Origin: Macrostomum lignano
Taxonomy: Eukaryota
DNA: 64,000 nucleotides
Direction: 5' to 3'
Assembly (NCBI GenBank): GCA_002269645.1
Contig: NIVC01001291.1
Coordinates: 186,001-250,000, forward strand
The notes under the pieces were generated by a model. That model did not search any database. It was not told where the DNA came from and worked only from the letters and a program-made list of their open reading frames with translations. Position 1 is the first letter of the stretch. The number at the start of each line of letters is the position of its first letter. The translations under genes and the position numbers were made by a program. Positions 21,698-60,532 of the stretch are shown here, in pieces.

Positions 21698-22140
<443 letters not shown>

Positions 22141-28951: not shown

Positions 28952-29061
28952 GTAGGCCAACCAAGCCGCGGCGTTGACAGGTGTCTGCTCAGCGACGACA
29001 GCGACTCGAGAACGAGCTCTGATTAAACATTGCTGACGAAAGTTGATTACAAAATCGGCTG

Positions 29062-36901: not shown

Positions 36902-38815
36902 ATGCTTTCTAACACACGAAGCATGGAATCGGCAGAAGCGGCGCTGGCTGCTCTGGTCGATGACGACCCTGACGCCTTCATGCGAGCTTTGAAGCCGGAC
37001 CTGTCGGGAAGGCTCGCCCAGCCTCTGGTCGACGTGACCGAAAGCCACGAGATCCGGTGTCGCTTGCCGAGAAGTCGCCGAAAGTGGGGCTTCGTCAGTC
37101 TGCAGTTCGGATACGCGATCCACCTGGCGATTCTGCTGCAGTCCGTGCGAGTGTTCGAGGCTCTGTTGGAAGACAGCTCCGAGCACGCGGCTCAGCTCGA
37201 GCTCGACGGCAGCACCGTTGTACACAGTCTGGCTCGCTGCCAGATGTACGCGCCGAGGTTCAAGCGAGCCAAGCGTCTGGAGACGGCGCTCCTCTCGACG
37301 CTGAGTAGAGAGCCTCGTCTGCTAGACAGGCTGGTCACTCAGGAGGACTCGAGCGGTCTCCGACCTCTGGAGGCGTGCGTGAAGTTCGCTGCATTCCGAC
37401 TGGCCCGCAAGATGTTGCACCTGCCGAACTACCTGTTGAAATCGGAGACTCGATCCGGCGGCTGGGCCGTCTGTCTCTACGACCTCACCGACTACGACCT
37501 GTGTCACGGGAGCCGGTGCAACTCGAGTCCTCTGCACCTGCTCACCTATGTAGCGTCGAGTCAGGTCGAGTCGCTCAAGAAGTCCAAGCTGATGGAGGAC
37601 CCTCTCATCCGACAGTGGCTTCGGTTGACTAACCGTCAGACTCGAGCGATCACATTTCTGAGGCTGCTGGTGATGAGCGTTCCAACATCGGTATTTCTTC
37701 TTACAGCCGTGAACGAATCAATCATGCTGACGGTGGCCTGTTTTGGCAACCTCATTCACTGCAACCGAGCAACATTTTCTGCTGCAAAATCATTAGGATA
37801 CAATGCGAGCGTTTTGAGCAATTTAACCATTTATTTTACGTTCTTTTATCAGCAAAAAATAAAGTCAAAAAGCTGTGCAGAATTTCTTCAATCCATCGAC
37901 ATAAACTTTCTGGTGATTAGTCTCGTGACTGCCTTCATGTGCGTCACTGCGGCTCTGAAGACTGGATTCTCTGCGCTTGAACACGAAAATAAGAAAAAAA
38001 TATTGACTGCGGACAACTGGTCGCTGCTTGACAGATTTGTTCGACGGGCCATCTTTGATTTTTATCACTTTGTTGCAATCGCGAGTGGCATCTGCTTTCT
38101 AGTTGTCGCGACGTTCCTGAGGTCCGATAATTTCTATGAAAATTTGTATCCAAGCGACCAGAGCAACGGTAGAGCTGTGGAGCAACTGTTCATTGGGTCC
38201 AACACTCTCTTCATCGCGTTCACGCTGCTACACTTTGCGCAGTACATGGAGATCGTGACGAAGTCGGTCGGGAAGCTCTTCTTCACCTTCCACTGCATGC
38301 TGTCCAGCTTCCTGGCCGCGCTGCCGCTGCTGTTCTACTGGATCATTCTCTTCAGCCTGGACTTCTTCATCTTGGTTGACTCGCCCGACTTCGAGACCGG
38401 CCTGTTGTCGCTCTACTCGTCGGTCAAGGTCATCCTCAACATGATCACCTTCAGCTTGGACAGCGTGATGGTTCTCATCATCCACGTGCTGTTCTTCGTG
38501 TTTGTGGGCCTCAACCTGCTGAACTTTCTCATCGCGTTCGTCACGGAGACGTTCCAGCGGTGCATCAGTGACTTCGATGTGGCCTTCGACCTGCTGCGAC
38601 TTCTGACAGCGTTGAAGACGTTTCGGTACTTCGGGTTCGTGTTTCGGTGCAAGCACTGGCTCGAGGTGAGGTCTCACGGCAGCTGTAGACGGCGGGTTAT
38701 CGTTGAGGTTGTTCAACCGGTGTTCAAGAGGCTGTACTCGAAAAGTGAATTCAAGCGGAAGCAGCAAAATTTTAGATCCTGTAGTCGAGAAATGGAATCT
38801 TTGCCGGATATTTAA
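36902..38815 (+). CDS. TRPV5/6-like cation channel, copy 1 (type A), intact 637 aa, intronless CDS
   Basis: Degenerate ankyrin repeats (GYAIHLAI, DGSTVVHSL, SGLRPLEAC), YDLTDYD linker (cf. YDLTEID), six hydrophobic segments, pore helix FETGLLSLYSSVKVILNMITF, S6/TRP region LNLLNFLIAFVTETFQR. Confidence 0.85.
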   Translation: MLSNTRSMESAEAALAALVDDDPDAFMRALKPDLSGRLAQPLVDVTESHEIRCRLPRSRRKWGFVSLQFGYAIHLAILLQSVRVFEALLEDSSEHAAQLELDGSTVVHSLARCQMYAPRFKRAKRLETALLSTLSREPRLLDRLVTQEDSSGLRPLEACVKFAAFRLARKMLHLPNYLLKSETRSGGWAVCLYDLTDYDLCHGSRCNSSPLHLLTYVASSQVESLKKSKLMEDPLIRQWLRLTNRQTRAITFLRLLVMSVPTSVFLLTAVNESIMLTVACFGNLIHCNRATFSAAKSLGYNASVLSNLTIYFTFFYQQKIKSKSCAEFLQSIDINFLVISLVTAFMCVTAALKTGFSALEHENKKKILTADNWSLLDRFVRRAIFDFYHFVAIASGICFLVVATFLRSDNFYENLYPSDQSNGRAVEQLFIGSNTLFIAFTLLHFAQYMEIVTKSVGKLFFTFHCMLSSFLAALPLLFYWIILFSLDFFILVDSPDFETGLLSLYSSVKVILNMITFSLDSVMVLIIHVLFFVFVGLNLLNFLIAFVTETFQRCISDFDVAFDLLRLLTALKTFRYFGFVFRCKHWLEVRSHGSCRRRVIVEVVQPVFKRLYSKSEFKRKQQNFRSCSREMESLPDI

Positions 38816-38907
38816 TGCATTCTTTTAGAGATTTTCGACGACTTTCTGAACGTTGTGCCCGTGCGCTTGCCCTGCCAAAGTGCACTCTGCTCCGTATTTG
38901 TTTTTGG

Positions 38908-39655
38908 TGTGATAGGCTCGGCGGTGTAAGCCGCTTAGCCCTTTGGGTTGTCTGCGCGCTGGTTGGCTGGGCCGCCCTTTTCTTTTTGGCCTTCCTCCCG
39001 GGCTGGCCTCCCCCAGCTGCGCCGTGATTGGCCGGTGGGTGGCTGGGCCGGGGGTGGGGCGGGGGTGGGGCGGGGGGGAGCCCCCGGCTCCGGGAGGGTC
39101 GTGGCATTTTAAGGCGCGGCCGGGGCGGGTGGCTGTCGGCCCGTGGTTGTGTTGGTTTGCCGCACTCTACAACGCAGGCCCAGAGCGCCGATTACAGCGT
39201 CTTTAGACCGTCCTTCCCCTAACACATACGCAATAAACGTTTACCATCGGGTCCGCCAGCCGCGAGCAGACCTCAGCTACGATTTATTGACCGCACGCGC
39301 AAGGGCGAGCTATCCGCGAAGTAAGTCACTGCCTTGTCTCTTCATTTCGGGAGCTGTAGCAGGGACAGTCCGTGTGACCTGACGCCGACTCAGAGGGGAC
39401 TAGGCCAGGTAGTCAGCTACGGGCCACCCTGTACTGTAAGCCCGCTGTACATAGACGCCAGTTTGTGCGCCCTGACGCCCTGCTAAAGGTGATCGACATC
39501 ACAGCGTCCCTACGCGTGTGCCGGCCACTTGGGTGCGTCCTGACGCCCCAGACCTAGGGTCCCGTGCGGACACTCGCGTCCCGACGCAGGCCAGCACGGG
39601 CCCGCGTACTCTGACCCTCGTAGGTGCACCATTCCTGAGAGTCGCGAGTACAACA
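38908..39655 (+). mobile_element. solo-LTR-like GC-rich element, copy 1
   Basis: Starts TGTGATAGG and ends GTACAACA. Contains CCAAT (gtgattggcc), GC boxes, TTTTAAGG and AATAAA (39232). No convincing 4-6-bp TSD. Confidence 0.35.
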
Positions 39656-40456
39656 TGAACCTTAGAGCGCAAAACAATATTGCAGTTTCATATTTATGCG
39701 TCATTCGTTTTGCAATATTTTCCTTTGCAAAAGTCCCATCCCATATCTCTTTCAAATGTGTTTTCTTAAAGTTTTTCTGGAAACCTTTTAAATCTTGGAT
39801 TAACTTCTCTGCTGCTTTGAAGTGGCCCTTATTGTACTACGTGTAATTCCTTTACAATCGGTAAATTATTGTACAAGCGTCGTAATCTACTATAAAAATT
39901 CTAAGCGCGATTCTGTGATAAGCATCCAAGAGTCGCTAGGAGCAAGTGCTAATTTCATCATTTAGTATTTCGGTACAACCTTTAATTGATTGCTATAAAC
40001 TGCCAATAAATATTGAACGTCCCAGCCTTTTATCTAACCTTCATTTGTAACCTTCCAAATTGGTCGGTACGTACGCTCGTAGCAATAGCTGCTGAACATT
40101 CGCCTTCCAGGGTTTATAATGAAGCTGGTTTCACTCACGGGTGAAAACTACTCGTAGTACTCAACAGAAACTTACGATTAAATAGTTGAATATACGAGCG
40201 TATGTTGGCTCAAAGTACGTTTTATTCGTGAATGCAAAATATTCAAGCAGTGTACTCGTAGATGTACGGACTGAGACGGGAGAAAACCAAGGTAAACGAC
40301 ACAGCATTCTGCGCAATGACTAAGCAGTATGGAGAAATATTAGGAAAGCTGAATCGCCTGCCTCTAATCAAGTTAATCCAGCTAAACATCGCGAATCAAG
40401 CTTCCAAACAAAGGATTTTGCCACGAAGGTATTCGCAGGTTTAGACGATTAGGACA

Positions 40457-42395
40457 TTATTGCCTTTTAAAAGCCGGTTGAACAACTTCAACGACCACCC
40501 GACGTCTGCAGATGCCATGAGATCTCACTTCTAGCCAGTGATTGCACCGGGGTACAAACTTAAAGTACCGAAACGTCTTCAGCGCTGCCAGAAGCCGCAG
40601 CAGGTCGAACGCCACGTCGAAATCGCTGATGCACCGCTGGAACGTCTCTGTGACAGACGCTATGAGAAAGTTCAACAGGTTGATGCTGACAAACATAAAG
40701 AATGCGAAATGAATAATGAGAACGATGGAACTGTCTAGGTTGAAGTTGATCATGTTCAGTATGACTCTCACGGATGAATACAAAGATAGAGAACCAGTGC
40801 TAAAGTCTTGCGTGTCAACCAGGATGAAGAAAATCAAGCTAAACAAAATTATCCAAAAGTAAAGCAGAGGCATGGAAGCCAGGAAACTTGTCATCATGCT
40901 GTGAAATATGAAAAACAGTTTCCCAATGCCTCTTGATACAATCTCCAAATACTGGGAATACTGCAAGAGAACGGATGCGATAAATAAAGCATTCGAGCCG
41001 AGAAACAGCTGCTCAGTGACCCAGTGACCGCTGGTTGATGGGGAGCAGTGTCCGGTACCACCCTGAGTAGTTCGCCCAAAAGTTGGTGAACAGAACAACT
41101 AGGAAGCAGGAGCTGCTGCCAATAGTTACTGCCAGGTAAACGTCGAACATGGTTCTACGGACGAATCGGTGCGTGGGTCGCCAGTTGTCGGCTGTGAGAA
41201 GCTTCATCCGCTGACTCCGCTCCAGGAGCCGCAGAACAATCTTCACGCAGGCTACGATGACTTTGAAGACCAGAACCGCAAAAATCACACAGGTGTTTAC
41301 AAATATTGCCTCGCCGATTCTTGAGCACTTAGTCTGCTTAACTGTCTGATCATTAAACACTTTCCAAAAGAGGGTTGAGTTCAACAACACGGTCTCATTG
41401 AAGCCTAGCTTCTCTGCGGCTGTGAAGGTGGCTTGATTACAGTGAATCAGCAAACCAAAACTTGATACAAGTAGCATTACATATTGGCTAAACACCGTCA
41501 ACAAAAATGCTGCTGGCGGTATGCCCATCACCAACAGCCTCAGAAATGTGATCGCTCGAGTCTGACGGTACGTCAACCGAAGCCACTGTCGGATGAGAGG
41601 GTCCTCCATCAGCTTGGACTTCTTGAGTGACTCGACCTGACTCGACGCTACATAGGTGAGCAGGTGCAGAGGACTCGAGTTGCACCGGCTCCCGTGACAC
41701 AGGTCGTAGTCGGAGAGGTCGTAGAGACGGACGGCCCAGCCGCCGGATCGAGTCTCCGATTTCAACAGATAGTTCGGCAGGTGCAACATCTTGCGGGCCA
41801 GTCGGAATGCAGCGAACTTCACGCACGCCTCCAGAGGTCGGAGACCGCTCGAGTCCTCCTGAGTGACCAGCCTGTCTAGCAGACGAGGCTCTCTACTCAG
41901 CGTCGAGAGGAGCGCCGTCTCCAGACGCTTGGCTCGCTTGAACCTCGGCGCGTACATCTGGCAGCGAGCCAGACTGTGTAAAACGGTGCTGCCGTCGAGC
42001 TCGAGCTGAGCCGCGTGCTCGGAGCTGTCTTCCAACAGAGCCTCGAACACTCGCACGGACTGCAGCAGAATCGCCAGGTGGATCGCGTATCCGAACTGCA
42101 GACTGACGAAGCCCCACTTTCGGCGACTTCTCGGCAAGCGACACCGGATCTCGTGGCTTTCGGTCACGTCGACCAGAGGCTGGGCGAGCCTTCCCGACAG
42201 GTCCGGCTTCAAAGCTCGCATGAAGGCGTCAGGGTCGTCATCGACCAGAGCAGCCAGCGCCGCTTCTGCCGATTCCATGCTTTGTTTCCGTTCCCGAATC
42301 ATGTTTGCACTTTTTGGTGCCTTCTGCTGCGTTTCGATTTGCTTTAAAATTTCTCGCATACCGAAGTCAGCCAGAAGTGTTTTATCTGCGTCCAC
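40457..42395 (-). pseudogene. TRPV5/6-like channel, copy 2 (type B), frameshifted near 41025
   Basis: Split into ORFs 41013-42395 and 40457-41098. Reads ccagtgacc versus ccagccagacc in the intact copies 4 and 6 (net 2-nt loss). Probable true start ATG 42359 after the acceptor at 42412. Confidence 0.8.
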
Positions 42396-44166
42396 TATAT
42401 TTGCCTTTCCACTTTGAAACAGTGTAAGAGAATAAGAGTCATGGTCTATGAGAACCGCTCCCTGGCCTTCAGCCCGTCTGTCAGTAGCCCAGCTGACTTC
42501 CCAAACGGCTCTGAATGCAGTGCTCCCCTGAATTCCTGGGCAACCCCTGGGCGTTGTCTTCCTATTTAGACTTGAGTTTAGCAGCTGTCCTCTCAGGCGC
42601 TCCAGTTGAACGGGTCCGATATTCAGTTTTAAACTCGTATTAGTCTCGAGCTATTGAATGAGTTCGTTTTCAAATTTAAAGTAGAATTTACCACTAACAC
42701 ACATCGGCTTCGTCGAAAGTTACTAGGATCTGGAGACAGAAATACAATATGCTTTATCACTCAATCGAAAGTGTTGTATTGATGGTTGTCTCGGGGTGGT
42801 TTGGTAGGTCTTCAGAATCCCATCGCTGCCACCAATGTTGTACCTGTGCTACCTACTCGGACAGCGCCAGCACAGTTAAATTGACTTTTCGTCCTTTTGA
42901 TCGGGAGTCTTCAATCGTAGCGTAGCTAGTGCTGCCACCAGTTCCTTCAGGTCTCGGCTTTCGATGAGGTGGGCTTCCCGTCGGAACAAAATAAACAAGT
43001 AAACGAACTCAGCACCGCGTGCAGATTTGAAGATTAACGAACAAGGCGTCTGGTCAGCAGATCCAGCTGGGCCCAGTGGGTGGTTGGGAAGGCGATGTAG
43101 GCCTCCTTTAGACTTGGGCGTCTATGTTTAGTCAGGCGTATTACAGACGGAAACATGGTAGCAGAAGAACTGAAACTGAAAGTGAAATCCTTGACGGAAA
43201 CAAGGGTGAGGGGGCCCCGTACATATATGCTGGGAATCCCCATTGCACCATTGTGCGCCAGATAGCGTGACTCAGTATCTATTTTTAGAACTGACGTCAC
43301 CTCCCGCCTTTGAGAAGGCCGGGGTCGTGATCCCCGTAAACACAGGCCAGCGAGTGTAGTAAACATGTTTACTCCAGGACTCCAGGACTTTTGGACTCCA
43401 GGAAAACACGGCTTTTCATGTGACTTGCTCAAATGACAGAGGAAAACAGGACCACCAATAGTGACCTCAAGACTGGAGTAAAAGGAAGAGCAGACCACAG
43501 CACAGATGTCCATGGCTGCAAACACGGCTTGGAGATTGGAGCTCGTAGACAAGTTTTCGTCGGTTTTTAAAACAGTCAAGAAATTTGTTGCTAGACTTGA
43601 GCTATTGCCAGTTCCCTTGATTGAATCTTGATTATCGAGATTTAAACTTAAATTTGCATGCTAAAAAGCTCAAATACGGAGATGCCTTTCTGGAACCGGA
43701 TCGTTACTCAATTCAACGGCTAAAAAATTCAACCATAGTTTTTAATATCATATACGTGCAAATTTTTGCTGGAGAGCCGTTGCTTTTCAGACTGGCTCCC
43801 AAAAAAGTTCCACTGCAATAGAGACTCAGGCTATGCAGAAATGAGTTACATAGCACTATTGGGCTACTTTCTTCGTCAAATCAATTCATTTGATAATGTT
43901 GTTTGCTCTGCGCCCTCGAGACCATACCAAGGACAACTAAGGACCATACTTGCCTGACTGTATCGCCAGAACTGACTCTAGTTCAGTGGCCTTTGTTTGT
44001 TCAGGCTGGTCAAATGTTTTGGAGAAAAATGTACACTTGTGACCAGCGATTCCCTGTATATTGATTTGCTGGCAGCTATACTTTGCAAAGCTCATAAAAG
44101 CAGCGCACCAGAAAACTAACAGAGATCGGACTGATTCTGCGGCAAACTGTTCAGCTGCACAAAGTA

Positions 44167-46184
44167 ATGGGCGAAGGGATCCCGGCTACTAACGACTTTA
44201 TCAGAGTTCGCTCCAGCAACAGAATTTCACTTCTTGCAGGTAATCGGGTGCTGCCGAGTCAGAACGATACAAACTTGAAAGAGTTGTTCAACATGGAATC
44301 AGCAGAGGCGGCGCTGGCTGCTCTGGTCGATGACGACCCTGACGCCTTCATGCGAGCTTTGAAGCCGGACCTGTCGGGAAGGCTCGCCCAGCCTCTGGTC
44401 GACGTGACCGAAAGCCACGAGATCCGGTGTCGCTTGCCGAGAAGTCGCCGAAAGTGGGGCTTCGTCAGTCTGCAGTTCGGATACGCGATCCACCTGGCGA
44501 TTCTGCTGCAGTCTGTGCGAGTGTTCGAGGCTCTGTTGGAAGACAGCTCCGAGCACGCGGCTCAGCTCGAGCTCGACGGCAGCACCGTTGTACACAGTCT
44601 GGCTCGCTGCCAGATGTACGCGCCGAGGTTCAAGCGAGCCAAGCGTCTGGAGACGGCGCTCCTCTCGACGCTGAGTAGAGAGCCTCGTCTGCTAGACAGG
44701 CTGGTCACTCAGGAGGACTCGAGCGGTCTCCGACCTCTGGAGGCGTGCGTGAAGTTCGCTGCATTCCGACTGGCCCGCAAGATGTTGCACCTGCCGAACT
44801 ATCTGTTGAAATCGGAGACTCGATCCGGCGGCTGGGCCGTCCGTCTCTACGACCTCACCGACTACGACCTGTGTCACGGGAGCCGGTGCAACTCGAGTCC
44901 TCTGCACCTGCTCACCTATGTAGCGTCGAGTCAGGTCGAGTCGCTCAAGAAGTCCAAGCTGATGGAGGACCCTCTCATCCGACAGTGGCTTCGGTTGACG
45001 TACCGTCAGACTCGAGCGATCACATTTCTGAGGCTGTTGGTAATGAGCGTTCCAACATCGGTATTTCTTCTCACAGCCGTGAACGAATCAATCATGCTGA
45101 CGGTGGCCTGTTTTGGCAACCTCATTCACTGCAACCGAGCAACATTTTCTGCTGCAAAATCATTAGGATTCAATGCCAGCGTTTTGAGCAATTTAACCAT
45201 TTATTTTAAGTTTTTTTATCAGCAAAAAATAAAGTCAAAAAGCTGTGCAGAATTTCTTGAATCCGTCGACATAAACTTTCTGGTGATTAGTCTCGTGACT
45301 GCCTTCATGTGCGTCACTGCGGCTCTGAAGACTGGATTCTCTGCGCTTGAACACAAAAATAAGAAAAAATATTGACTGCGGACAACTGGTCGCTGCTTGA
45401 CAGATTTGTTCGACGGGCCATCTTTGATTTTTATCACTTTGTTGCAATCGCGAGTGGCATCTGCTTTCTAGTTGTCGCGACGTTCCTGAGGTCCGATAAT
45501 TTCTATGAAAATTTGTATCCAAGCGACCAAAGCAACGGTAGAGCTGTGGAGCAACTGTTCATTGGGTCCAACACTCTCTTCATCGCGTTCACACTGCTGC
45601 ACTTTGCGCAGTACATGGAGATCGTGACGAAGTCGGTCGGGAAGCTCTTCTTCACCTTCCACTGCATGCTGTCCAGCTTCCTGGCCGCGCTGCCGCTGCT
45701 GTTCTACTGGATCATTCTCTTCAGCCTGGACTTCTTCATCTTGGTCGACTCGCCCGACTTCGAGACCGGCCTGTTGTCGCTCTACTCGTCGGTCAAGGTC
45801 ATCCTCAACATGATCACCTTCAGCTTGGACAGCGTAATGGTTCTCATCATCCACGTGCTGTTCTTCGTGTTTGTGGGCCTCAACCTGCTGAACTTTCTCA
45901 TCGCGTTCGTCACGGAGACGTTCCAGCGGTGCATCAGCGACTTCGATGTGGCCTTCGACCTGCTGCGACTTCTGACAGCGTTGAAGACGTTTCGGTACTT
46001 CGGGTTCGTGTTTCGGTGCAAGCACTGGCTCGAGGTGAGGTCTCACGGCAGCTGTAGACGTCGGGTTATCGTTGATGTTGTTCAACCGGTGTTCAAGAGG
46101 CTGTACTCGAAAAGTGAATTCAGGCGGAAGCAGCGAAATTTTAGATCCTGTAGTCGAGAGATGGAATCTTTGCCGGATATTTAA
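44167..46184 (+). pseudogene. TRPV5/6-like channel, copy 3 (type A), -1 frameshift in an A-run near 45365
   Basis: ORFs 44167-45375 and 45372-46184. aag(A6)t versus aag(A7)t in intact copy 1. Probable true start ATG 44293, since GT-AG intron 44164-44239 contains the ORF-caller ATG. Confidence 0.8.
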
Positions 46185-46276
46185 TGCATTCTTTTAGAGA
46201 TTTTCGACGACTTTCTAAATTTTGTGCCCGTGCGCTTGCCCTGCCAAAGTGCACTCTGCTCCGTATTTGTTTTTGA

Positions 46277-47018
46277 TGTGATAGGCTCAGCGGTGTAAGC
46301 CGCTTAGCCCTTGGGTTGTCTGCGCGCTGGTTGGCTGGGCCGCCCTGTTTGGCCCTCCTCCCGGGCTGCCCTCCCCCAGCTGCGCCGTGATTGGCCGGTG
46401 GGTGGCTGGGCCGGGGGTGGGGCGGGGGTTGGGGCGGGGGGGAGCCCCCGGCCCCGGGGGGTCGTGGCCTTTTAAGGCGCGGCCGGGGCGGGTGGCTGTC
46501 GGCCCGTGGTTGTGTTGGTTTGCCGCACTCTACAACGCAGGCCCAGAGCGCCGATTACAGCGTCTTTAGACCGTCCTTCCCCTAACACATACGCAATAAA
46601 CGTTGACCATCGGGTCCGCCAGCCGCGAGCAGACCTCAGCTACGATTTATTGACCGCACGCGCAAGGGCGAGCTATCCGCGAAGTAAGTCACTGCCTTGT
46701 CTCTTCATTTCGGGAGCTGTAGCAGGGACATTCCGTGTGTCCTGACGCCGACTCAGGGTGGACTAGGTCAGGTAGTCAGCTAGGGGCCACCCTGTACTGT
46801 AAGCCCGCTGTACATAGACGCCAGCTTGTGTGCCCTGACGCCCTGCTAAAGGTGATCGACATCACAGCGTCCCTAAGCGTGTGCCGGCCACTTGGGTGCG
46901 CCCTGACGCCCCAGACCTAGGGTCCCGTGCGGACACTCGCGCCCCGACGCAGGCCAGCACGGGCCCGCGTACTCTGACCCTCGTAGGTGCACCCTTCCTG
47001 AGAGTCGCGAGTACAACA
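46277..47018 (+). mobile_element. solo-LTR-like GC-rich element, copy 2
   Basis: Homologue of 38908-39655 within the duplicated unit. Flanked by TGA on both sides. Confidence 0.35.
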
Positions 47019-49760: not shown

Positions 49761-51531
49761 TATATTTGCCTTTCCACTTTGAAACAGTGTAAGAGAATAA
49801 GAGTCATGGTCTATGAGAACCGCTCCCTGGCCTTCAGCCCGTCTGTCAGTAGCCCAGCTGACTTCCCAAACGGCTCTGAATGCAGTGCTCCCCTGAATTC
49901 CTGGGCAACCCCTGGGCGTTGTCTTCCTATTTAGACTTGAGTTTAGCAGCTGTCCTCTCAGGCGCTCCAGTTGAACGGGTCCGATATTCAGTTTTAAACT
50001 CGTATTAGTCTCGAGCTATTGAATGAGTTCGTTTTCAAATTTAAAGTAGAATTTACCACTAACACACATCGGCTTCGTCGAAAGTTACTAGGATCTGGAG
50101 ACAGAAATACAATATGCTTTATCACTCAATCGAAAGTGTTGTATTGATGGTTGTCTCGGGGTGGTTTGGTAGGTCTTCAGAATCCCATCGCTGCCACCAA
50201 TGTTGTACCTGTGCTACCTACTCGGACAGCGCCAGCACAGTTAAATTGACTTTTCGTCCTTTTGATCGGGAGTCTTCAATCGTAGCGTAGCTAGTGCTGC
50301 CACCAGTTCCTTCAGGTCTCGGCTTTCGATGAGGTGGGCTTCCCGTCGGAACAAAATAAACAAGTAAACGAACTCAGCACCGCGTGCAGATTTGAAGATT
50401 AACGAACAAGGCGTCTGGTCAGCAGATCCAGCTGGGCCCAGTGGGTGGTTGGGAAGGCGATGTAGGCCTCCTTTAGACTTGGGCGTCTATGTTTAGTCAG
50501 GCGTATTACAGACGGAAACATGGTAGCAGAAGAACTGAAACTGAAAGTGAAATCCTTGACGGAAACAAGGGTGAGGGGGCCCCGTACATATATGCTGGGA
50601 ATCCCCATTGCACCATTGTGCGCCAGATAGCGTGACTCAGTATCTATTTTTAGAACTGACGTCACCTCCCGCCTTTGAGAAGGCCGGGGTCGTGATCCCC
50701 GTAAACACAGGCCAGCGAGTGTAGTAAACATGTTTACTCCAGGACTCCAGGACTTTTGGACTCCAGGAAAACACGGCTTTTCATGTGACTTGCTCAAATG
50801 ACAGAGGAAAACAGGACCACCAATAGTGACCTCAAGACTGGAGTAAAAGGAAGAGCAGACCACAGCACAGATGTCCATGGCTGCAAACACGGCTTGGAGA
50901 TTGGAGCTCGTAGACAAGTTTTCGTCGGTTTTTAAAACAGTCAAGAAATTTGTTGCTAGACTTGAGCTATTGCCAGTTCCCTTGATTGAATCTTGATTAT
51001 CGAGATTTAAACTTAAATTTGCATGCTAAAAAGCTCAAATACGGAGATGCCTTTCTGGAACCGGATCGTTACTCAATTCAACGGCTAAAAAATTCAACCA
51101 TAGTTTTTAATATCATATACGTGCAAATTTTTGCTGGAGAGCCGTTGCTTTTCAGACTGGCTCCCAAAAAAGTTCCACTGCAATAGAGACTCAGGCTATG
51201 CAGAAATGAGTTACATAGCACTATTGGGCTACTTTCTTCGTCAAATCAATTCATTTGATAATGTTGTTTGCTCTGCGCCCTCGAGACCATACCAAGGACA
51301 ACTAAGGACCATACTTGCCTGACTGTATCGCCAGAACTGACTCTAGTTCAGTGGCCTTTGTTTGTTCAGGCTGGTCAAATGTTTTGGAGAAAAATGTACA
51401 CTTGTGACCAGCGATTCCCTGTATATTGATTTGCTGGCAGCTATACTTTGCAAAGCTCATAAAAGCAGCGCACCAGAAAACTAACAGAGATCGGACTGAT
51501 TCTGCGGCAAACTGTTCAGCTGCACAAAGTA

Positions 51532-53549
51532 ATGGGCGAAGGGATCCCGGCTACTAACGACTTTATCAGAGTTCGCTCCAGCAACAGAATTTCACTTCTT
51601 GCAGGTAATCGGGTGCTGCCGAGTCAGAACGATACAAACTTGAAAGAGTTGTTCAACATGGAATCAGCAGAGGCGGCGCTGGCTGCTCTGGTCGATGACG
51701 ACCCTGACGCCTTCATGCGAGCTTTGAAGCCGGACCTGTCGGGAAGGCTCGCCCAGCCTCTGGTCGACGTGACCGAAAGCCACGAGATCCGGTGTCGCTT
51801 GCCGAGAAGTCGCCGAAAGTGGGGCTTCGTCAGTCTGCAGTTCGGATACGCGATCCACCTGGCGATTCTGCTGCAGTCTGTGCGAGTGTTCGAGGCTCTG
51901 TTGGAAGACAGCTCCGAGCACGCGGCTCAGCTCGAGCTCGACGGCAGCACCGTTGTACACAGTCTGGCTCGCTGCCAGATGTACGCGCCGAGGTTCAAGC
52001 GAGCCAAGCGTCTGGAGACGGCGCTCCTCTCGACGCTGAGTAGAGAGCCTCGTCTGCTAGACAGGCTGGTCACTCAGGAGGACTCGAGCGGTCTCCGACC
52101 TCTGGAGGCGTGCGTGAAGTTCGCTGCATTCCGACTGGCCCGCAAGATGTTGCACCTGCCGAACTACCTGTTGAAATCGGAGACTCGATCCGGCGGCTGG
52201 GCCGTCTGTCTCTACGACCTCACCGACTACGACCTGTGTCACGGGAGCCGGTGCAACTCGAGTCCTCTGCACCTGCTCACCTATGTAGCGTCGAGTCAGG
52301 TCGAGTCGCTCAAGAAGTCCAAGCTGATGGAGGACCCTCTCATCCGACAGTGGCTTCGGTTGACGTACCGTCAGACTCGAGCGATCACATTTCTGAGGCT
52401 GTTGGTAATGAGCGTTCCAACATCGGTATTTCTTCTCACAGCCGTGAACGAATCAATCATGCTGACGGTGGCCTGTTTTGGCAACCTCATTCACTGCAAC
52501 CGAGCAACATTTTCTGCTGCAAAATCATTAGGATTCAATGCCAGCGTTTTGAGCAATTTAACCATTTATTTTAAGTTTTTTTATCAGCAAAAAATAAAGT
52601 CAAAAAGCTGTGCAGAATTTCTTGAATCCGTCGACATAAACTTTCTGGTGATTAGTCTCGTGACTGCCTTCATGTGCGTCACTGCGGCTCTGAAGACTGG
52701 ATTCTCTGCGCTTGAACACAAAAATAAGAAAAAATATTGACTGCGGACAACTGGTCGCTGCTTGACAGATTTGTTCGACGGGCCATCTTTGATTTTTATC
52801 ACTTTGTTGCAATCGCGAGTGGCATCTGCTTTCTAGTTGTCGCGACGTTCCTGAGGTCCGATAATTTCTATGAAAATTTGTATCCAAGCGACCAAAGCAA
52901 CGGTAGAGCTGTGGAGCAACTGTTCATTGGGTCCAACACTCTCTTCATCGCGTTCACACTGCTGCACTTTGCGCAGTACATGGAGATCGTGACGAAGTCG
53001 GTCGGGAAGCTCTTCTTCACCTTCCACTGCATGCTGTCCAGCTTCCTGGCCGCGCTGCCGCTGCTGTTCTACTGGATCATTCTCTTCAGCCTGGACTTCT
53101 TCATCTTGGTCGACTCGCCCGACTTCGAGACCGGCCTGTTGTCGCTCTACTCGTCGGTCAAGGTCATCCTCAACATGATCACCTTCAGCTTGGACAGCGT
53201 AATGGTTCTCATCATCCACGTGCTGTTCTTCGTGTTTGTGGGCCTCAACCTGCTGAACTTTCTCATCGCGTTCGTCACGGAGACGTTCCAGCGGTGCATC
53301 AGCGACTTCGATGTGGCCTTCGACCTGCTGCGACTTCTGACAGCGTTGAAGACGTTTCGGTACTTCGGGTTCGTGTTTCGGTGCAAGCACTGGCTCGAGG
53401 TGAGGTCTCACGGCAGCTGTAGACGTCGGGTTATCGTTGATGTTGTTCAACCGGTGTTCAAGAGGCTGTACTCGAAAAGTGAATTCAGGCGGAAGCAGCG
53501 AAATTTTAGATCCTGTAGTCGAGAGATGGAATCTTTGCCGGATATTTAA
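51532..53549 (+). pseudogene. TRPV5/6-like channel, copy 5 (type A), same A6 frameshift as copy 3 (near 52730)
   Basis: ORFs 51532-52740 and 52737-53549. Probable start ATG 51658. Confidence 0.8.
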
Positions 53550-53641
53550 TGCATTCTTTTAGAGATTTTCGACGACTTTCTAAATTTTGTGCCCGTGCGC
53601 TTGCCCTGCCAAAGTGCACTCTGCTCCGTATTTGTTTTTGA

Positions 53642-54383
53642 TGTGATAGGCTCAGCGGTGTAAGCCGCTTAGCCCTTGGGTTGTCTGCGCGCTGGTTGGC
53701 TGGGCCGCCCTGTTTGGCCCTCCTCCCGGGCTGCCCTCCCCAGCTGCGCCGTGATTGGCCGGTGGGTGGCTGGGCCGGGGGTGGGGCGGGGGTTGGGGCG
53801 GGGGGGAGCCCCCGGCCCCGGGGGGGTCGTGGCCTTTTAAGGCGCGGCCGGGGCGGGTGGCTGTCGGCCCGTGGTTGTGTTGGTTTGCCGCACTCTACAA
53901 CGCAGGCCCAGAGCGCCGATTACAGCGTCTTTAGACCGTCCTTCCCCTAACACATACGCAATAAACGTTGACCATCGGGTCCGCCAGCCGCGAGCAGACC
54001 TCAGCTACGATTTATTGACCGCACGCGCAAGGGCGAGCTATCCGCGAAGTAAGTCACTGCCTTGTCTCTTCATTTCGGGAGCTGTAGCAGGGACATTCCG
54101 TGTGTCCTGACGCCGACTCAGGGTGGACTAGGTCAGGTAGTCAGCTAGGGGCCACCCTGTACTGTAAGCCCGCTGTACATAGACGCCAGCTTGTGTGCCC
54201 TGACGCCCTGCTAAAGGTGATCGACATCACAGCGTCCCTAAGCGTGTGCCGGCCACTTGGGTGCGCCCTGACGCCCCAGACCTAGGGTCCCGTGCGGACA
54301 CTCGCGCCCCGACGCAGGCCAGCACGGGCCCGCGTACTCTGACCCTCGTAGGTGCACCCTTCCTGAGAGTCGCGAGTACAACA
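53642..54383 (+). mobile_element. solo-LTR-like GC-rich element, copy 3
   Basis: Homologue of 46277-47018, offset by 7365 bp. Confidence 0.35.
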
Positions 54384-55184
54384 TGAACCTTAGAGCGCAA
54401 AACAACATTGCAGTTTCATATTTATGCGTCATTCGTTTTACACTATTTTCCTTTGCAAAAGTCCCATCCCATATCTCTTTCAAATGTGCTTTCTTAAAGT
54501 TTTTCTGGAAACCTTTTAAATCTTGGATTAACTTCTCTGCTGCTTTGAAGTGGCCCTTATTGTACTACGTGTAATTCCTTTACAATCGGTAAATTATTGT
54601 ACAAGCGTCGTAATCTACTATAAAAATTCTAAGCGCGATTCTGTGATAAGCATCCAAGAGTCGCTAGGAGCAAGTGCTAATTTCATCATTTAGTATTTCG
54701 GTACAACCTTTAATTGATTGCTATAAACTGCCAATAAATATTGAACGTCTCAGCCTTTTATCTAACCTTCATTTGTAACCTTCCAAATTGGTCGGTACGT
54801 ACGCTCGTAGCAATAGCTGCTGAACACTCGCCTTCCAGGGTTTATAATGAAGCTGATTTCACTCGCGGGTGAAAACTACTCGTAGTACTCAACAGAAACT
54901 TACGATTAAATAGTTGAATATACGAGCGTATGTTGGCTCAAAGTACGTTTTATTCGTGAATGCAAAATATTCAAGCAGTGTACTCGTAGATGTACGGACT
55001 GAGACGGGAGAAAACCGAGGTAAACGACACAACATTCTGCGCAATGACTAAGCAGTATGGAGAAATATTAGGAAAGCTGAATCGCCTGCCTCTAATCAAG
55101 TTAATTCAGCTAAACATCGCGAATCAAGCTTCTAAACAAAGGATTTTGCCATGAAGGTGTTCGCTGGTTTAGACGATTAGGACA

Positions 55185-57227
55185 TTATTGCCTTTTAAAA
55201 GCCGGTTGAACAACTTCAACGACCACCCGACGTCTGCAGATGCCATGAGATCTCACTTCTAGCCAGTGATTGCACCGGGGTACAAACTTAAAGTACCGAA
55301 ACGTCTTCAGCGCTGCCAGAAGCCGCAGCAGGTCGAACGCCACGTCGAAATCGCTGATGCACCGCTGGAACGTCTCCGTGACAGACGCTATGAGAAAGTT
55401 CAACAGGTTGATGCTGACAAACATAAAGAATGCGAAATGAATAATGAGAACGATGGAACTGTCTAGGTTGAAGTTGATCATGTTCAGTATGACTCTCACG
55501 GATGAATACAAAGATAGAGAACCAGTGCTAAAGTCTTGCGTGTCAACCAGGATGAAGAAAATCAAGCTAAACAAAATTATCCAAAAGTAAAGCAGAGGCA
55601 TGGAAGCCAGGAAACTTGTCATCATGCTGTGAAATATGAAAAACAGTTTCCCAATGCCTCTTGATACAATCTCCAAATACTGGGAATACTGCAAGAGAAC
55701 GGATGCGATAAATAAAGCATTCGAGCCGAGAAACAGCTGCTCGGTGACCCAGCCAGACCGCTGGTTGATGGGGAGCAGTGTCCGGTACCACCCTGAGTAG
55801 TTCGCCCAAAAGTTGGTGAACAGAACAACTAGGAAGCAGGAGCTGCTGCCAATAGTTACTGCCAGGTAAACGTCGAACATTGTTATACGGACGAATCGGT
55901 GCGTGGGTCGCCAGTTGTCGGCTGTGAGAAGCTTCATCCGCTGACTCCGCTCCAGGAGCCACAGAACAATCTTCACGCAGGCTACGATGACTTTGAAGAC
56001 CAGAACCGCAAAAATCACACAAGTGTTTACAAATATTGCCTCGCCGATTCTTGAGCACTTAGTCTGCTTAACTGTCTGATCATTAAACACTTTCCAAAAG
56101 AGGGTTGAGTTCAACAACACGGTCTCATTGAAGCCTAGCTTCTCTGCGGCTGTGAAGGTGGCTTGATTACAGTGAATCAGCAAACCAAAACTTGATACAA
56201 GTAGCATTACATATTGGCTAAACACCGTCAACAAAAATGCTGCTGGTGGTATGCCCATCACCAACAGCCTTAGAAATGTGATCGCTCGAGTCTGACGGTA
56301 CGTCAACCGAAGCCACTGTCGGATGAGAGGGTCCTCCATCAGCTTAGACTTCTTGAGCAACTCGACCTGACTCGACGCTACATAGGTGAGCAGGTGCAGA
56401 GGACTCGAGTTGCACCGGCTCCCGTGACACAGGTCGTAGTCGGTGAGGTCGTAGAGACGGACGGCCCAGCCGCCGGATCGAGTCTCCGATTTCAACAGAT
56501 AGTTCGGCAGGTGCAACATCTTGCGGGCCAGTCGGAATGCAGCGAACTTCACGCACGCCTCCAGAGGTCGGAGACCGCTCGAGTCCTCCTGAGTGACCAG
56601 CCTGTCTAGCAGACGAGGCTCTCTACTCAGCGTCGAGAGGAGCGCCGTCTCCAGACGCTTGGCTCGCTTGAACCTCGGCGCGTACATCTGACAGCGAGCC
56701 AGACTGTGTACAACGGTGCTGCCGTCGAGCTCGAGCTGAGCCGCGTGCTCGGAGCTGTCTTCCAACAGAGCCTCGAACACTCGCACGGACTGCAGCAGAA
56801 TCGCCAGGTGGATCGCGTATCCGAACTGCAGACTGACGAAGCCCCACTTTCGGCGACTTCTCGGCAAGCGACACCGGATCTCGTGGCTTTCGGTCACGTC
56901 GACCAGAGGCTGGGCGAGCCTTCCCGACAGGTCCGGCTTCAAAGCTCGCATGAAGGCGTCAGGGTCGTCATCGACCAGAGCAGCCAGCGCCGCTTCTGCC
57001 GATTCCATGCTTTGCTTCCTTTCCCGAATCATGTTTGCACTTTTTGGCTCTTTCTGCTGCGTTTCGATTTGCTTTAAAATTTCTCGCATACCGAAGTCAG
57101 CCAGAAGTGTTTTATCTGCGTCCACTATATTTGCCTTTCCACTTTGAAACAGTGTAAGAGAATAAGAGTCATGGTCTATGAGAACCGCTCCCTGGCAGAC
57201 AGACAGAAATACAATATGCTTTATCAC
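55185..57227 (-). CDS. TRPV5/6-like channel, copy 6 (type B), intact
   Basis: Uninterrupted frame. Probable start ATG 57089. The upstream MIKHIV extension arises from a 263-bp spacer deletion and lies 5' of the putative acceptor. Confidence 0.85.
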   Translation of the reverse strand: MIKHIVFLSVCQGAVLIDHDSYSLTLFQSGKANIVDADKTLLADFGMREILKQIETQQKEPKSANMIRERKQSMESAEAALAALVDDDPDAFMRALKPDLSGRLAQPLVDVTESHEIRCRLPRSRRKWGFVSLQFGYAIHLAILLQSVRVFEALLEDSSEHAAQLELDGSTVVHSLARCQMYAPRFKRAKRLETALLSTLSREPRLLDRLVTQEDSSGLRPLEACVKFAAFRLARKMLHLPNYLLKSETRSGGWAVRLYDLTDYDLCHGSRCNSSPLHLLTYVASSQVELLKKSKLMEDPLIRQWLRLTYRQTRAITFLRLLVMGIPPAAFLLTVFSQYVMLLVSSFGLLIHCNQATFTAAEKLGFNETVLLNSTLFWKVFNDQTVKQTKCSRIGEAIFVNTCVIFAVLVFKVIVACVKIVLWLLERSQRMKLLTADNWRPTHRFVRITMFDVYLAVTIGSSSCFLVVLFTNFWANYSGWYRTLLPINQRSGWVTEQLFLGSNALFIASVLLQYSQYLEIVSRGIGKLFFIFHSMMTSFLASMPLLYFWIILFSLIFFILVDTQDFSTGSLSLYSSVRVILNMINFNLDSSIVLIIHFAFFMFVSINLLNFLIASVTETFQRCISDFDVAFDLLRLLAALKTFRYFKFVPRCNHWLEVRSHGICRRRVVVEVVQPAFKRQ

Positions 57228-58609
57228 TCAATCGAAAGTGTTGTATTGATGGTTGTCTCGGGGTGGTTTGGTAGGTCTTCAGAATCCCATCGCTGCCACC
57301 AATGTTGTACCTGTGCTACCTACTCGGACAGCGCCAGCACAGTTAAATTGACTTTTCGTCCTTTTGATCGGGAGTCTTCAATCGTAGCGTAGCTAGTGCT
57401 GCCACCAGTTCCTTCAGGTCTCGGCTTTCGATGAGGTGGGCTTCCCGTCGGAACAAAATAAACAAGTAAACGAACTCAGCACCGCGTGCAGATTTGAAGA
57501 TTAACGAACAAGGCGTCTGGTCAGCAGATCCAGCTGGGCCCAGTGGGTGGTTGGGAAGGCGATGTAGGCCTCCTTTAGACTTGGGCGTCTATGTTTAGTC
57601 AGGCGTATTACAGACGGAAACATGGTAGCAGAAGAACTGAAACTGAAAGTGAAATCCTTGACGGAAACAAGGGTGAGGGGGGCCCGTACATATATGCTGG
57701 GAATCCCCATTGCACCATTGTGCGCCAGATAGCGTGACTCAGTATCTATTTTTAGAACTGACGTCACCTCCCGCCTTTGAGAAGGCCGGGGTCGTGGTCC
57801 CCGTAAACACAGGCCAGCGAGTGTAGTAAACATGTTTACTCCAGGACTCCAGGACTTTTGGACTCCAGGAAAACACGGCTTTTCATGTGACTTGCTCAAA
57901 TGACAGAGGAAAACAGGACCACCAATAGTGACCTCAAGACTGGAGTAAAAGGAAGAGCAGACCACAGCACAGATGTCCATGGCTGCAAACACGGCTTGGA
58001 GATTGGAGCTCGTAGACAAGTTTTCGTCGGTTTTTAAAACAGTCAAGAAATTTGTTGCTAGACTTGAGCTATTGCCAGTTCCCTTGATTGAATCTTGATT
58101 ATCGAGATTTAAACTTAAATTTGCATGCTAAAAAGCTCAAATACGGAGATGCCTTTCTGGAACCGGATCGTTACTCAATTCAACGGCTAAAAAATTCAAC
58201 CATAGTTTTTAATATCAATATATGAGCACCTTTTTGCTGGAGAGCCGTTGCTCTTCAGAGTGGCTCCCAAAAAGTTTCGCTGCAATAAACTCAGGCTATG
58301 CAGAAATAAGTTACATAGCATTATTAGGCTACTTTCTTCGCCAAATCAATTCATTTGATAATGTTGTTTGCTCTGCGCCATCGAGACCATACCTGCCTGA
58401 CTTTATCGCTAGAACTGACTCTAGTTCAGTGGCCTTTGTTTGTTCAGGCTGGTCAAATGTTTTGGAGAAAAATGTACACTTGTGACCAGCGATTCCCTGT
58501 ATATTGATTTGCTGGCAGCTATACTTTGCAAAGCTCATAAAAGCAGCGCACCAGAAAACTAACAGAGATCGGACTGATTCTGCGGCAAACTGTTCAGCTG
58601 CACAAAGTA

Positions 58610-60532
58610 ATGGGCGAAGGGATCCCGGCTACTAACGACTTTATCAGAGTTCGCTCCAGCAACAGAATTTCACTTCTTGCAGGTAATCGGGTGCTGCCGA
58701 GTCAGAACGATACAAACTTGAAAGAGTTGTTCAACATGGAATCAGCAGAGGCGGCGCTGGCTGCTCTGGTCGATGACGACCCTGACGCCTTCATGCGAGC
58801 TTTGAAGCCGGACCTGTCGGGAAGGCTCGCCCAGCCTCTGGTCGACGTGACCGAAAGCCACGAGATCCGGTGTCGCTTGCCGAGAAGTCGCCGAAAGTGG
58901 GGCTTCGTCAGTCTGCAGTTCGGATACGCGATCCACCTGGCGATTCTGCTGCAGTCCGTGCGAGTGTTCGAGGCTCTGTTGGAAGACAGCTCCGAGCACG
59001 CGGCTCAGCTCGAGCTCGACGGCAGCACCGTTGTACACAGTCTGGCTCGCTGCCAGATGTACGCGCCGAGGTTCAAGCGAGCCAAGCGTCTGGAGACGGC
59101 GCTCCTCTCGACGCTGAGTAGAGAGCCTCGTCTGCTAGACAGGCTGGTCACTCAGGAGGACTCGAGCGGTCTCCGACCTCTGGAGGCGTGCGTGAAGTTC
59201 GCTGCATTCCGACTGGCCCGCAAGATGTTGCACCTGCCGAACTATCTGTTGAAATCGGAGACTCGATCCGGCGGCTGGGCCGTCTGTCTCTACGACCTCA
59301 CCGACTACGACCTGTGTCACGGGAGCCGGTGCAACTCGAGTCCTCTGCACCTGCTCACCTATGTAGCGTCGAGTCAGGTCGAGTCACTCAAGAAGTCCAA
59401 GCTGATGGAGGACCCTCTCATCCGACAGTGGCTTCGGTTGACGTACCGTCAGACTCGAGCGATCACATTTCTGAGGCTGCTGGTGATGAGCGTTCCAACA
59501 TCGGTATTTCTTCTCACAGCTGTGAACGAATCAATCATGCTGACGGTGGCCTGTTTTGGCAACCTCATTCACTGCAACCGAGCAACCTTTGCCGCCGCTT
59601 TTCGGGCAGGCTACAACACATCGTCTCTTTCCAACACGACGCTGTACCATGAGATTTTTAACAGCCAGTCGGTAAAGAATTATAGTTGCGGTGAATTATT
59701 TGACTCGATGCTTTTGAGCTATTTAATGATAACATTTGTCTCCGTGTTTCATATGGTCATTATGCTCATCAAGTTGGTGCTCTATTTTGTTGAGTGCCAG
59801 CGAAAGATAAGGACTGTGGCGCCCATCGACAGCTCAACTGGGCGCTTTGTGCGCCGCTCGACTTTTGATTTCTATCAGGCGGTGGCTTTCGTAAGCGGCA
59901 TCAGCTTTTTTATATTCGCTTCAGCACTGCAACTAAAAAATTTTTATGAATACTTTGAGCCAAGAGGTGTAATGGAACAGCTTTTAATTGGGTCCAACAC
60001 TCTCTTCATCGCGTTCACGCTGCTGCACTTTGCGCAGTACATGGAGATCGTGACGAAGTCGGTCGGGAAGCTCTTCTTCACCTTCCACTGCATGCTGTCC
60101 AGCTTCCTGGCCGCGCTGCCGCTGCTGTTCTACTGGATCATTCTCTTCAGCCTGGACTTCTTCATCTTGGTCGACTCGCCCGACTTCGAGACCGGCCTGT
60201 TGTCGCTCTACTCGTCGGTCAAGGTCATCCTCAACATGATCACCTTCAGCTTGGACAGCGTGATGGTTCTCATCATCCACGTGCTGTTCTTCGTGTTTGT
60301 GGGCCTCAACCTGCTGAACTATCTCATCGCGTTCGTCACAGAGACGTTCCAGCGGTGCATCAGCGACTTCGATGTGGCCTTCGACCTGCTGCGACTTCTG
60401 ACAGCATTGAAGACGTTTCGGTACTTCGGGTTCGTGTTTCGGTGCAAGCACTGGCTCGAGGTGAGGTCTCACGGCAGCTGTAGACGTCGAGTGGTCGTCG
60501 AGGTTACTCATCCGGTTTTCAAGAAGTTTTAA
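58610..60532 (+). CDS. TRPV5/6-like channel, copy 7 (type C, chimeric), intact
   Basis: Type-A N-terminus and pore region with a distinct central segment (~59591-59986) and a short tail (VFKKF-stop). AATAAA at 60591. Probable start ATG 58736. Confidence 0.85.
   Translation: MGEGIPATNDFIRVRSSNRISLLAGNRVLPSQNDTNLKELFNMESAEAALAALVDDDPDAFMRALKPDLSGRLAQPLVDVTESHEIRCRLPRSRRKWGFVSLQFGYAIHLAILLQSVRVFEALLEDSSEHAAQLELDGSTVVHSLARCQMYAPRFKRAKRLETALLSTLSREPRLLDRLVTQEDSSGLRPLEACVKFAAFRLARKMLHLPNYLLKSETRSGGWAVCLYDLTDYDLCHGSRCNSSPLHLLTYVASSQVESLKKSKLMEDPLIRQWLRLTYRQTRAITFLRLLVMSVPTSVFLLTAVNESIMLTVACFGNLIHCNRATFAAAFRAGYNTSSLSNTTLYHEIFNSQSVKNYSCGELFDSMLLSYLMITFVSVFHMVIMLIKLVLYFVECQRKIRTVAPIDSSTGRFVRRSTFDFYQAVAFVSGISFFIFASALQLKNFYEYFEPRGVMEQLLIGSNTLFIAFTLLHFAQYMEIVTKSVGKLFFTFHCMLSSFLAALPLLFYWIILFSLDFFILVDSPDFETGLLSLYSSVKVILNMITFSLDSVMVLIIHVLFFVFVGLNLLNYLIAFVTETFQRCISDFDVAFDLLRLLTALKTFRYFGFVFRCKHWLEVRSHGSCRRRVVVEVTHPVFKKF

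Follow-up and report, generated by a model that had tools for sequence, protein, structure and literature searches.

The ampliconic palindromes of the primate Y chromosome consist of inverted arms around a short unique spacer and are kept at least about 99% identical by intrachromosomal conversion. Homogenization limited to one region is known from the Pcdh2 tandem paralogs of fugu, where one region exceeds 99% nucleotide (nt) identity and the rest is diverged, as inferred from synonymous identity and raised GC content at third codon positions (GC3) (PMC1852091; Noonan et al. 2004 cited therein). Here we analyzed a 64,000-nt window of the Macrostomum lignano genome (assembly GCA_002269645.1 = Mlig_3_7, contig NIVC01001291.1, positions 186,001-250,000), in which a listing of open reading frames (ORFs) and self-comparison revealed an array of seven paralogous coding regions for TRPV-type channels that share a nearly identical 5' tract.

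Like the Y palindromes, the array has inverted arms of ~99% identity, 754 bp long and separated by a 2.0-kb spacer. However, these arms are very short, each spanning no more than a portion of its gene, and the genes run on into old diverged sequence. Compared with the fugu protocadherins, the logic and the result are the same where synonymous sites are concerned; GC3, considered in both, does not discriminate here. The fugu paralogs are in direct orientation and are homogenized in the 3' region of their variable exons, whereas the array copies are inverted, share a 5' cytoplasmic module and encode channels. The original prediction for this stretch, made by a model from the letters alone, knew of no description of such an arrangement; region-limited homogenization of receptor paralogs was already on record in fugu (PMC1852091). 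In our literature search, no paper on gene conversion among tandem paralogs of TRP channels came up, which is weak evidence of absence, as the coverage of the search was incomplete.

Vertebrate TRPV1-6 (structures e.g. TRPV6 5wo7/7s88 and TRPV1 7l2h) have the same overall fold and domain order as predicted for the array proteins, from helices of ankyrin type (putative in the array) to a C-terminal β-strand, and share with them the S6 motif LLNFLIA. The two differ in that identity is 12-15% and the array genes are intronless. TRPV homologs are present in M. lignano (PMC5196486). The TRPVL ("TRPV-like") subfamily has been described in cnidarians and some spiralians, and no TRPVL structure exists (10.1101/2021.11.14.466824); it is likewise a TRPV-related clade outside canonical TRPV1-6, from non-model invertebrates.

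Results

A 753-bp tract is shared by inverted, anciently diverged paralogs

According to their sequence types, the seven coding regions were named A1, B1, A2, B2, A3, B3 and C. As assembled, their orientation alternates + - + - + - +, and the start-to-start spacings of like-oriented copies are 7370, 7365 and 7078 bp. A and B copies are separated by a spacer of 1.6 kb where they lie tail-to-tail and by one of 2.0 kb where they lie head-to-head. ORF listing and self-comparison thus bore out the predicted alternation on a unit of ~7.37 kb. The DNA upstream of A1, the left edge of the array, is unrelated to that upstream of A2, A3 and C.

All seven copies begin with a 753-bp tract of ~99% identity, which runs from the ATG of MESAEAA to LRLLVM (residue 251, at the start of transmembrane segment S1). 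Hydropathy, alignment to TRPV6 and an AlphaFold2 (AF2) model agree that this tract is the entire cytoplasmic N-terminal module. The inverted arms measure 754-760 bp at 98.8-99.2% identity and begin 1-7 nt 5' of the MESAEAA ATG, which is preceded by "aagc" in A1 and the B copies and by "caac" in A2, A3 and C. The 3' boundary lies between nt 753 and 754 and does not differ by a base among B1, B2 and B3. A separate end of the tract in B3, suggested by a BLAST arm reaching 775-778, was dropped; in the alignment, a single match at nt 762 is due to chance, and B3 has the boundary of B1 and B2. The arm alignment and the identity profile therefore confirmed the tract with the limits first proposed for it.

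To describe the divergence along the gene, we compared A1 with B2. Sliding nt identity was 97-100% up to nt 720 and then dropped to 69%, 59% and 43-53% through nt 1250. Past the tract, A and B types were 43-60% identical in S1-S4, 60-73% in S5-S6 and 80-90% after S6. By the Nei-Gojobori method, the synonymous divergence (dS) of A1 and B2 was 0.021 over codons 1-251 and 0.73 over codons 541-602; over codons 252-540 the proportion of synonymous differences (pS) was 0.78-1.0, that is, saturated. Nonsynonymous divergence (dN) between A and B was 0.19-0.64, well under the saturated dS. At the protein level, identity was 27-51% in S1-S4 including the S1-S2 loop, 72% in the pore domain and 87-89% in the cytoplasmic post-S6 part; the S1-S2 loop carries conserved N-glycosylation sequons and cysteines. 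Thus, of the heavily diverged transmembrane half that had been predicted, S1-S4 fit the description, but the C-terminal third (pore, S6 and TRP helix) is only moderately diverged.

A uniform dS along the gene would have spoken against recombination, and it was not observed, dS being 0.02 in the tract versus saturated in S1-S6. Because identical synonymous sites adjoin saturated ones, we concluded that the tract had recently been copied from one old paralog to another. The same contrast (0.021 versus saturated) ruled out purifying selection as an explanation of the N-terminal identity. GC3 was 76% in the tract versus 52-61% in S1-S4, and 80% in an unrelated neighboring gene. As a separate observation, GC3 in the S5-S6 region (gene nt ~1340-1700, e.g. 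38260-38620) reaches 92-96% in the A and C copies but is 52-58% in the B copies, a striking contrast in codon composition for old paralogs of one unit.

The array encodes divergent TRPV-type proteins

Direct searches did not identify the proteins. Pfam returned no family for the A, B and C proteins at E ≤ 1, phmmer gave no match in the PDB, and a word-indexed search of 5.8 billion proteins gave none either; a PDB search with a profile of four array sequences reached YVC1 as its best match, at E = 1.6 only. Using the four-sequence profile with HMMER against 1.84 billion representatives, we found 128 proteins at E ≤ 1e-3, the best at 2.9e-15 and none below 1e-30. These remote homologs are mostly 570-660 amino acids (aa) long and mostly from environmental assemblies, and several align over query residues 41-581. 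The only named homolog found was an "uncharacterized protein" of the nemertean Lineus longissimus (XP_064621355.1). Pfam domains among 67 aligned sequences were Ion_trans (31/67), Ank_2 (15/67) and PKD_channel (13/67). When the window-only alignment was compared by hhalign with 64 homologs, they matched over residues 4-576 with a probability of 100% and E = 5e-40. The family profile in turn matched TRPV6 (2.4e-50), followed by TRPV5, V3, V2 and V1.

Structure prediction with AlphaFold on the four window sequences only was not usable (predicted local distance difference test, pLDDT, 33). With the 67-sequence alignment, AF2 reached a pLDDT of 83.2 and a predicted template modeling score (pTM) of 0.82. 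The model predicts paired helices at residues 2-165, a linker β-hairpin (strands 172-178/181-187), long helices that run from pre-S1/S1 through S6, a pore helix (493-504), a helix after S6 in the place of the TRP helix (551-569) and a strand near the C-terminus (593-599). Hydropathy segments at ~245-275, 327-350, 381-400, 420-445, 452-485 and 515-540, with a pore segment at 494-512, agree with the AF2 helices; by both approaches, six transmembrane helices and a re-entrant S5-S6 pore helix are present. In a Foldseek search of the PDB with the model, the top 50 matches were all TRPV1/2/3/5/6, with probability 1.0, query TM-scores of 0.5-0.59 and identities of 12-15%.

By profile and predicted structure, the proteins belong to the TRPV type of channels at the level of fold and superfamily and form a divergent, uncharacterized clade; the possibility that they fall outside the TRP channels is contradicted by the family profile and by the Foldseek result. 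The original prediction had called them TRPV5/6-like. Membership in the TRPV superfamily is supported by the family profile, hhalign and the AF2/Foldseek comparison, but a TRPV5/6 affinity is not. Foldseek and profile scores for TRPV1, V3, V5 and V6 were of the same order, one homolog taken alone (P0004) matched TRPV1 best (1e-14), and the filter aspartate (TIID-type), on which TRPV5/6 selectivity depends, is replaced: at the position of the Asp in the family motif MLNMvDF, the A and C copies have T and the B copies have N.

Further differences from the family concern the pore and both termini. The window proteins lack eight pore-turret residues, including a conserved Cys, and after S6 they read FDLLRLL, without Trp or Gln, where the family consensus is LQRL; the TRP box of TRPV channels is IWKLQR-like, with a conserved Trp. 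Compared with the family and TRPV6, ~100 residues are missing from their N-terminus. The alignment begins near TRPV6 residue 164, and the paired helices modeled at 2-165 would therefore amount to at most ~4 ankyrin repeats, against six in TRPV1-6, barring an upstream exon in both cases; the window proteins have no Pfam Ank match. Every family-invariant residue is retained in the intact copies. The array shares the motifs GLRPLE, YD(V/L)TDY(E/D), SPL, YS..LNM and LLNFLIA with the 128-member family, at an identity of 15-21%, and family members are sometimes tandem. Homologs in two other assemblies are also single-ORF genes. At one of these loci (GCA_013332975.1, JAAUXT010115685.1, 6080-16897), three single-ORF homologs of 642, 643 and 671 aa stand in direct tandem, and these three genes recur on a metagenome scaffold. 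We considered whether domain-limited homogenization might be a habit of the family and rejected this, as the tandem trio is diverged along its full length and has no homogenized module.

Units were probably multiplied recently, and three copies are frameshifted

The coordinates of the array features are collected in Table 1.

Table 1. Features of the TRPV-type array, in window positions
Feature	Position	Strand	Description
Tract, copy A1	36923-37675	+	Ankyrin-like helices, linker β-hairpin, pre-S1, first turn of S1
Tract, copy B1	41526-42278	-	Inverted arm, head-to-head with A2 across the 2.0-kb spacer
Tract, copy A2	44293-45045	+	
Tract, copy B2	48891-49643	-	
Tract, copy A3	51658-52410	+	
Tract, copy B3	56256-57008	-	Four private variants and three A-type states
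Tract, copy C	58736-59488	+	
A1, type A	36923-38815	+	Intact 630-aa TRPV-like ORF; left edge of the array
B1, type B	40457-42278	-	Broken; reads as ORFs 41013-42395 and 40457-41098
A2, type A	44293-46184	+	Frameshifted; two ORFs
B2, type B	47820-49643	-	Intact 607-aa ORF; frame open upstream to 49760
A3, type A	51658-53549	+	Frameshifted like A2
B3, type B	55185-57008	-	Intact ORF; frame open upstream to 57227
C, mosaic	58736-60532	+	Intact 598-aa ORF
Head-to-head spacer, ~2.0 kb	42279-44292; copies 49644-51657, 57009-58735		Between B and A starts; presumed divergent promoter region
Tail-to-tail spacer, ~1.6 kb	38816-40456; copies 46185-47819, 53550-55184		Between A and B stops
Open upstream frames	44167-44292; 49644-49760; 57009-57227		
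Near-identical adjacent 7.37-kb segments	~41419-48783, ~48784-56148		From the unit alignment; breakpoints approximate

An uninterrupted frame between ATG and stop is found in only four of the seven copies, A1, B2, B3 and C. In A2 and A3, there is an identical 1-bp deletion in an A7 run (45364-45369 and 52729-52734, respectively), and B1 has a 2-bp deletion with adjacent substitutions near 41022-41025, which is not in a homopolymer. The seven coding sequences of the original prediction thus hold as seven homologous ORF sets but not as seven intact genes, since A2, A3 and B1 are frameshifted in the assembly. Outside the tract, we counted by hand ~8 nonsynonymous and ~11 synonymous changes between A1 and A2, a ratio that, at the sequence level, suggests purifying selection.

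The reading frames remain open for 26-72 codons 5' of the MESAEAA ATG, with 42 codons in A2, A3 and C, 38 in B1 and B2, and 72 in B3. In addition, A2, A3 and C have a possible acceptor-like "ttcttgcag" at -55. Because of these two features, the MESAEAA ATG is not a proven start; the types may not have the same true 5' end or start codon, or may differ in a spliced or trans-spliced leader. Each head-to-head spacer also contains a 181-aa ORF with a TTG start (43034-43579 on the - strand, 50399-50944 and 57501-58046), which is conserved only together with the unit. Pfam gave no match for this ORF or for the upstream ORFs, and the 181-aa ORF is probably no gene.

We then compared whole units. Positions 36922-49831 and 44292-57196 are 99.2% identical across 12.9 kb, spacers included. 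Unit by unit, identity was 99.0% for U1/U2, 99.5% for U2/U3 and 98.5% for U1/U3, and up to 99.9% between tandem copies. High identity between copies of one type is consequently no peculiarity of the N-terminus, since such copies are 98.5-99.5% alike over whole units, including the spacers. Differences between U1 and U2 are confined to the initial 4.5 kb, a stretch that holds A, the tail spacer and the 3' part of B. U2 and U3 differ almost exclusively in the final 2.9 kb, which comprises the 5' part of B plus the head spacer; among these differences are deletions of 263 bp and 22 bp by which the third head-to-head spacer is shorter. From this block-wise distribution it follows that the two adjacent 7.37-kb segments are nearly identical, with ~4 substitutions and 2 indel columns between them, and A2 and A3 have their frameshift in common because it is carried in these segments. 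The segment pair either arose by duplication very recently or was over-expanded in the assembly. The "seven genes" are effectively two old paralog types plus one mosaic, recently multiplied.

An unlikely but real possibility is that the copy number is partly an artefact, with fewer real units (e.g. A1-B1-A2-B3-C) over-expanded during assembly and the frameshifts being homopolymer errors. The identical A7-run deletion in A2 and A3 and the handful of differences between the adjacent segments would fit such an origin. So would the source, as NIVC00000000 (the Mlig_3_7 genome) is a long-read (PacBio) assembly and the genome is rich in repeats (PMC5730564), and satellites abound in the window. Against this, the U1/U2 and U2/U3 differences are structured and block-wise, with indels of 263 bp and 22 bp, and the B1 lesion lies outside a homopolymer. 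Moreover, the inverted 753-bp identity is found inside a single unit, and over-expansion cannot produce such identity. Exact-protein look-ups in a gene-position index, using five start variants of A1, B2 and C, returned no recorded gene.

Variants in the tract and the type C gene are mosaic

Among the seven copies, the tract has 16 variable sites, 10 of them informative, and 15 site pairs fail the four-gamete test. Several states are common across types: A1 shares sites 9 and 15 with the B copies, A2 shares site 550 with the B copies, and C shares site 651 with B1 and B2. The coding sequences of A2 and A3 differ only at nt 510 and 550, and each difference switches to a state found in other copies. 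Read from the alignment, these patterns indicate repeated short exchanges in the tract after a founding event, with the caveat that the mosaic test covers few sites in a single assembly.

The C gene is mosaic on a larger scale. Its nt 1-851 are A-like, then a patch of ~430 bp (nt 852-1278, window ~59587-60000) shows saturated dS against both A and B, and after the patch the gene is again A-like at 97-100% to ~nt 1779, followed by a 3' end of its own. The patch covers the region from the S1-S2 loop through S4; therefore, patch-wise replacement also acts on the membrane module. Judging from its divergence, the donor of the patch must have been a third paralog lineage, which is not present in the window. 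C would thus be an A copy that received a patch from the S1-S2 loop to S4 from this third lineage, by the same conversion process.

Could a single chimeric event, without ongoing conversion, have produced these patterns? An inverted partial duplication or replacement in the ancestral unit, by which B acquired the N-terminus of A or A that of B, would then have been followed by amplification, and the 1% differences would be ordinary mutations. This would explain why every B copy has the same 3' boundary and why the tract divergence (0.8-1.2%) is close to the unit divergence (0.5-1.5%); the tandem trio of homologs in another genome, which has no homogenized domain, also shows that homogenization is not a family habit. 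Against it stand the 15 incompatible site pairs with states common to A and B copies, and the sole A2/A3 coding differences, which are 40 bp apart and both match the states of other copies. In addition, C documents patch-wise replacement in the same locus at other boundaries. We therefore consider a single event unlikely.

Surroundings of the array

Elsewhere in the window, an intronless ORF on the - strand (2677-4350) encodes a 557-aa TPR protein (Pfam TPR_19, ANAPC3 and TPR_14) with a GC3 of 80%, which is recorded on the 254,411-bp contig NIVC01001291.1 and which we take to resemble IFT56/TTC26. No other protein of the window was found in the gene-position index. Two very large minisatellite arrays follow, one at 5051-11228 with a 15/21/36-bp unit (CTGACACTGACATCA) in ~410 copies and one at 16338-20039 with a 35-bp unit in ~106 copies. 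They have strong and opposite GC/AT skews (-0.38 versus +0.40) and contain spurious ORFs of ~1600 aa in several frames. Short-period satellites are located at 14464-15472, 21698-25600, 29061-29396 and 32392-32815, with units of 18, 20, 4, 27, 21, 56 and 18 bp. Just 3' of the array, a 14/29-bp satellite (CGACGTTTGCCAGC) forms two inverted blocks (61687-62179 and 63157-63577) ~1 kb apart with 84-90% identity. Tandem repeats make up ~1/3 of the first 33 kb, and this satellite richness is as expected for the M. lignano genome. An Rfam scan of the window returned no match.

Discussion

The array is probably a lineage-specific, intronless cluster of very divergent TRPV-type genes that was shaped by interlocus gene conversion between inverted paralogs and by recent amplification. 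We propose that the old paralog types A and B came to lie tail-to-tail and head-to-head in a 7.37-kb unit, and that unequal recombination (crossover) may have amplified this unit very recently to ~3.2 copies. The first 753 bp of one type would have been overwritten by the other via ectopic recombination between inverted copies, and short-patch exchange would have continued afterwards, leaving all seven copies ~99% identical in the tract. The direction and the number of these conversion events are as we infer them. At the 5' side, conversion may have stopped at the ATG where the flanks of the old paralogs have no homology. At the 3' side, S1-S4 may have been too diverged (43-60% nt identity) for heteroduplex formation, or conversions reaching S1-S4 may have been selected against. 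The sharpness of the 3' boundary may stem from a single founding event, from a mismatch barrier or from selection against conversion of the sensor module.

Several points weigh against this conversion scenario. The mosaic sites are few and could partly stem from consensus polishing of the PacBio assembly, in which nearly identical repeats may contaminate one another. The shared boundary of the B copies and a tract divergence of ~1%, equal to that between units, mean that a single event before amplification could account for the bulk of the pattern. Nor is a high GC3 peculiar to the tract, as it is 80% in the neighboring gene and 80-96% in the A-type S5-S6 region. Three of the seven copies are frameshifted, and part of the array may be decaying. 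Finally, the array proteins are not in the gene-position index and hence have no independent assembly support. With respect to the gene conversion proposed in the original prediction, recombination behind the N-terminal identity is supported by dS and by the incompatible A/B variants; a continuously maintained design is not, because a founding replacement with minor exchange fits equally well.

That design was first read as a selected one, in which the common cytoplasmic module lets A, B and C co-assemble as heterotetramers with varied S1-S4 sensors. The tract edge does coincide with the module boundary between the cytoplasmic N-terminus and the start of S1, the other cytoplasmic part, after S6, is also the best conserved (87-89% aa identity), and variation is concentrated in S1-S4 and the glycosylated S1-S2 loop. 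Yet homology too low for recombination explains the boundary equally well, and with dS saturated in the transmembrane half, positive selection cannot be shown. As three copies are also broken and the reading is purely hypothetical, we regard selected design as quite unlikely. The intact copies would presumably be expressed as channel subunits, and a shared N-terminus may benefit them.

The array might also be viewed as a decaying set of pseudogenes, arising from recent segmental amplification of non-functional retrocopies, so that the similarity patterns would be neutral by-products. Three of seven copies are indeed frameshifted, the genes are intronless, no Pfam domain is recognized, and the family pore Asp and the TRP-box motif are lost. 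Four ORFs of 598-630 aa nevertheless remain open, and types A and B have stayed open despite saturated synonymous sites, with a dN of 0.19-0.64 far below dS. All family-invariant residues are kept, the AF2 model is confident, and homologs in other taxa are also single-ORF genes. These observations make a decaying pseudogene array very unlikely.

It is highly improbable that the layout of constant N-terminus and variable sensor is a selected cassette, an animal analogue of the bacterial invertible constant/variable gene systems, whose arms are kept identical both for A/B/C co-assembly and as substrates of recurrent flip-flop inversion, in which inverting the 3.85-kb segment (tail-to-tail arms) or the 2.0-kb promoter spacer (head-to-head arms) would swap membrane modules between promoters. 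In that reading, a 754-bp hairpin RNA could also arise by read-through of the convergent copies.

Taken together, probable gene conversion with recent amplification makes this array a neat example of an established process, here in a new and divergent TRPV-like family; it brings no new molecular mechanism. For annotation it carries a warning: trees built on the N-terminal part would mislead, and copy number and frame status need long-read confirmation. The family itself, with 128 representative clusters, is invisible to Pfam and escapes standard TRP censuses. For M. lignano, the locus is a natural experiment, in which anciently diverged channel paralogs bear a freshly homogenized cytoplasmic module with a breakpoint at the boundary between cytoplasm and membrane. 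Transgenesis exists for this animal (PMC5730564). If the intact copies are expressed, they would be ready-made chimeras for separating the assembly and sensing parts of a TRPV-type subunit.

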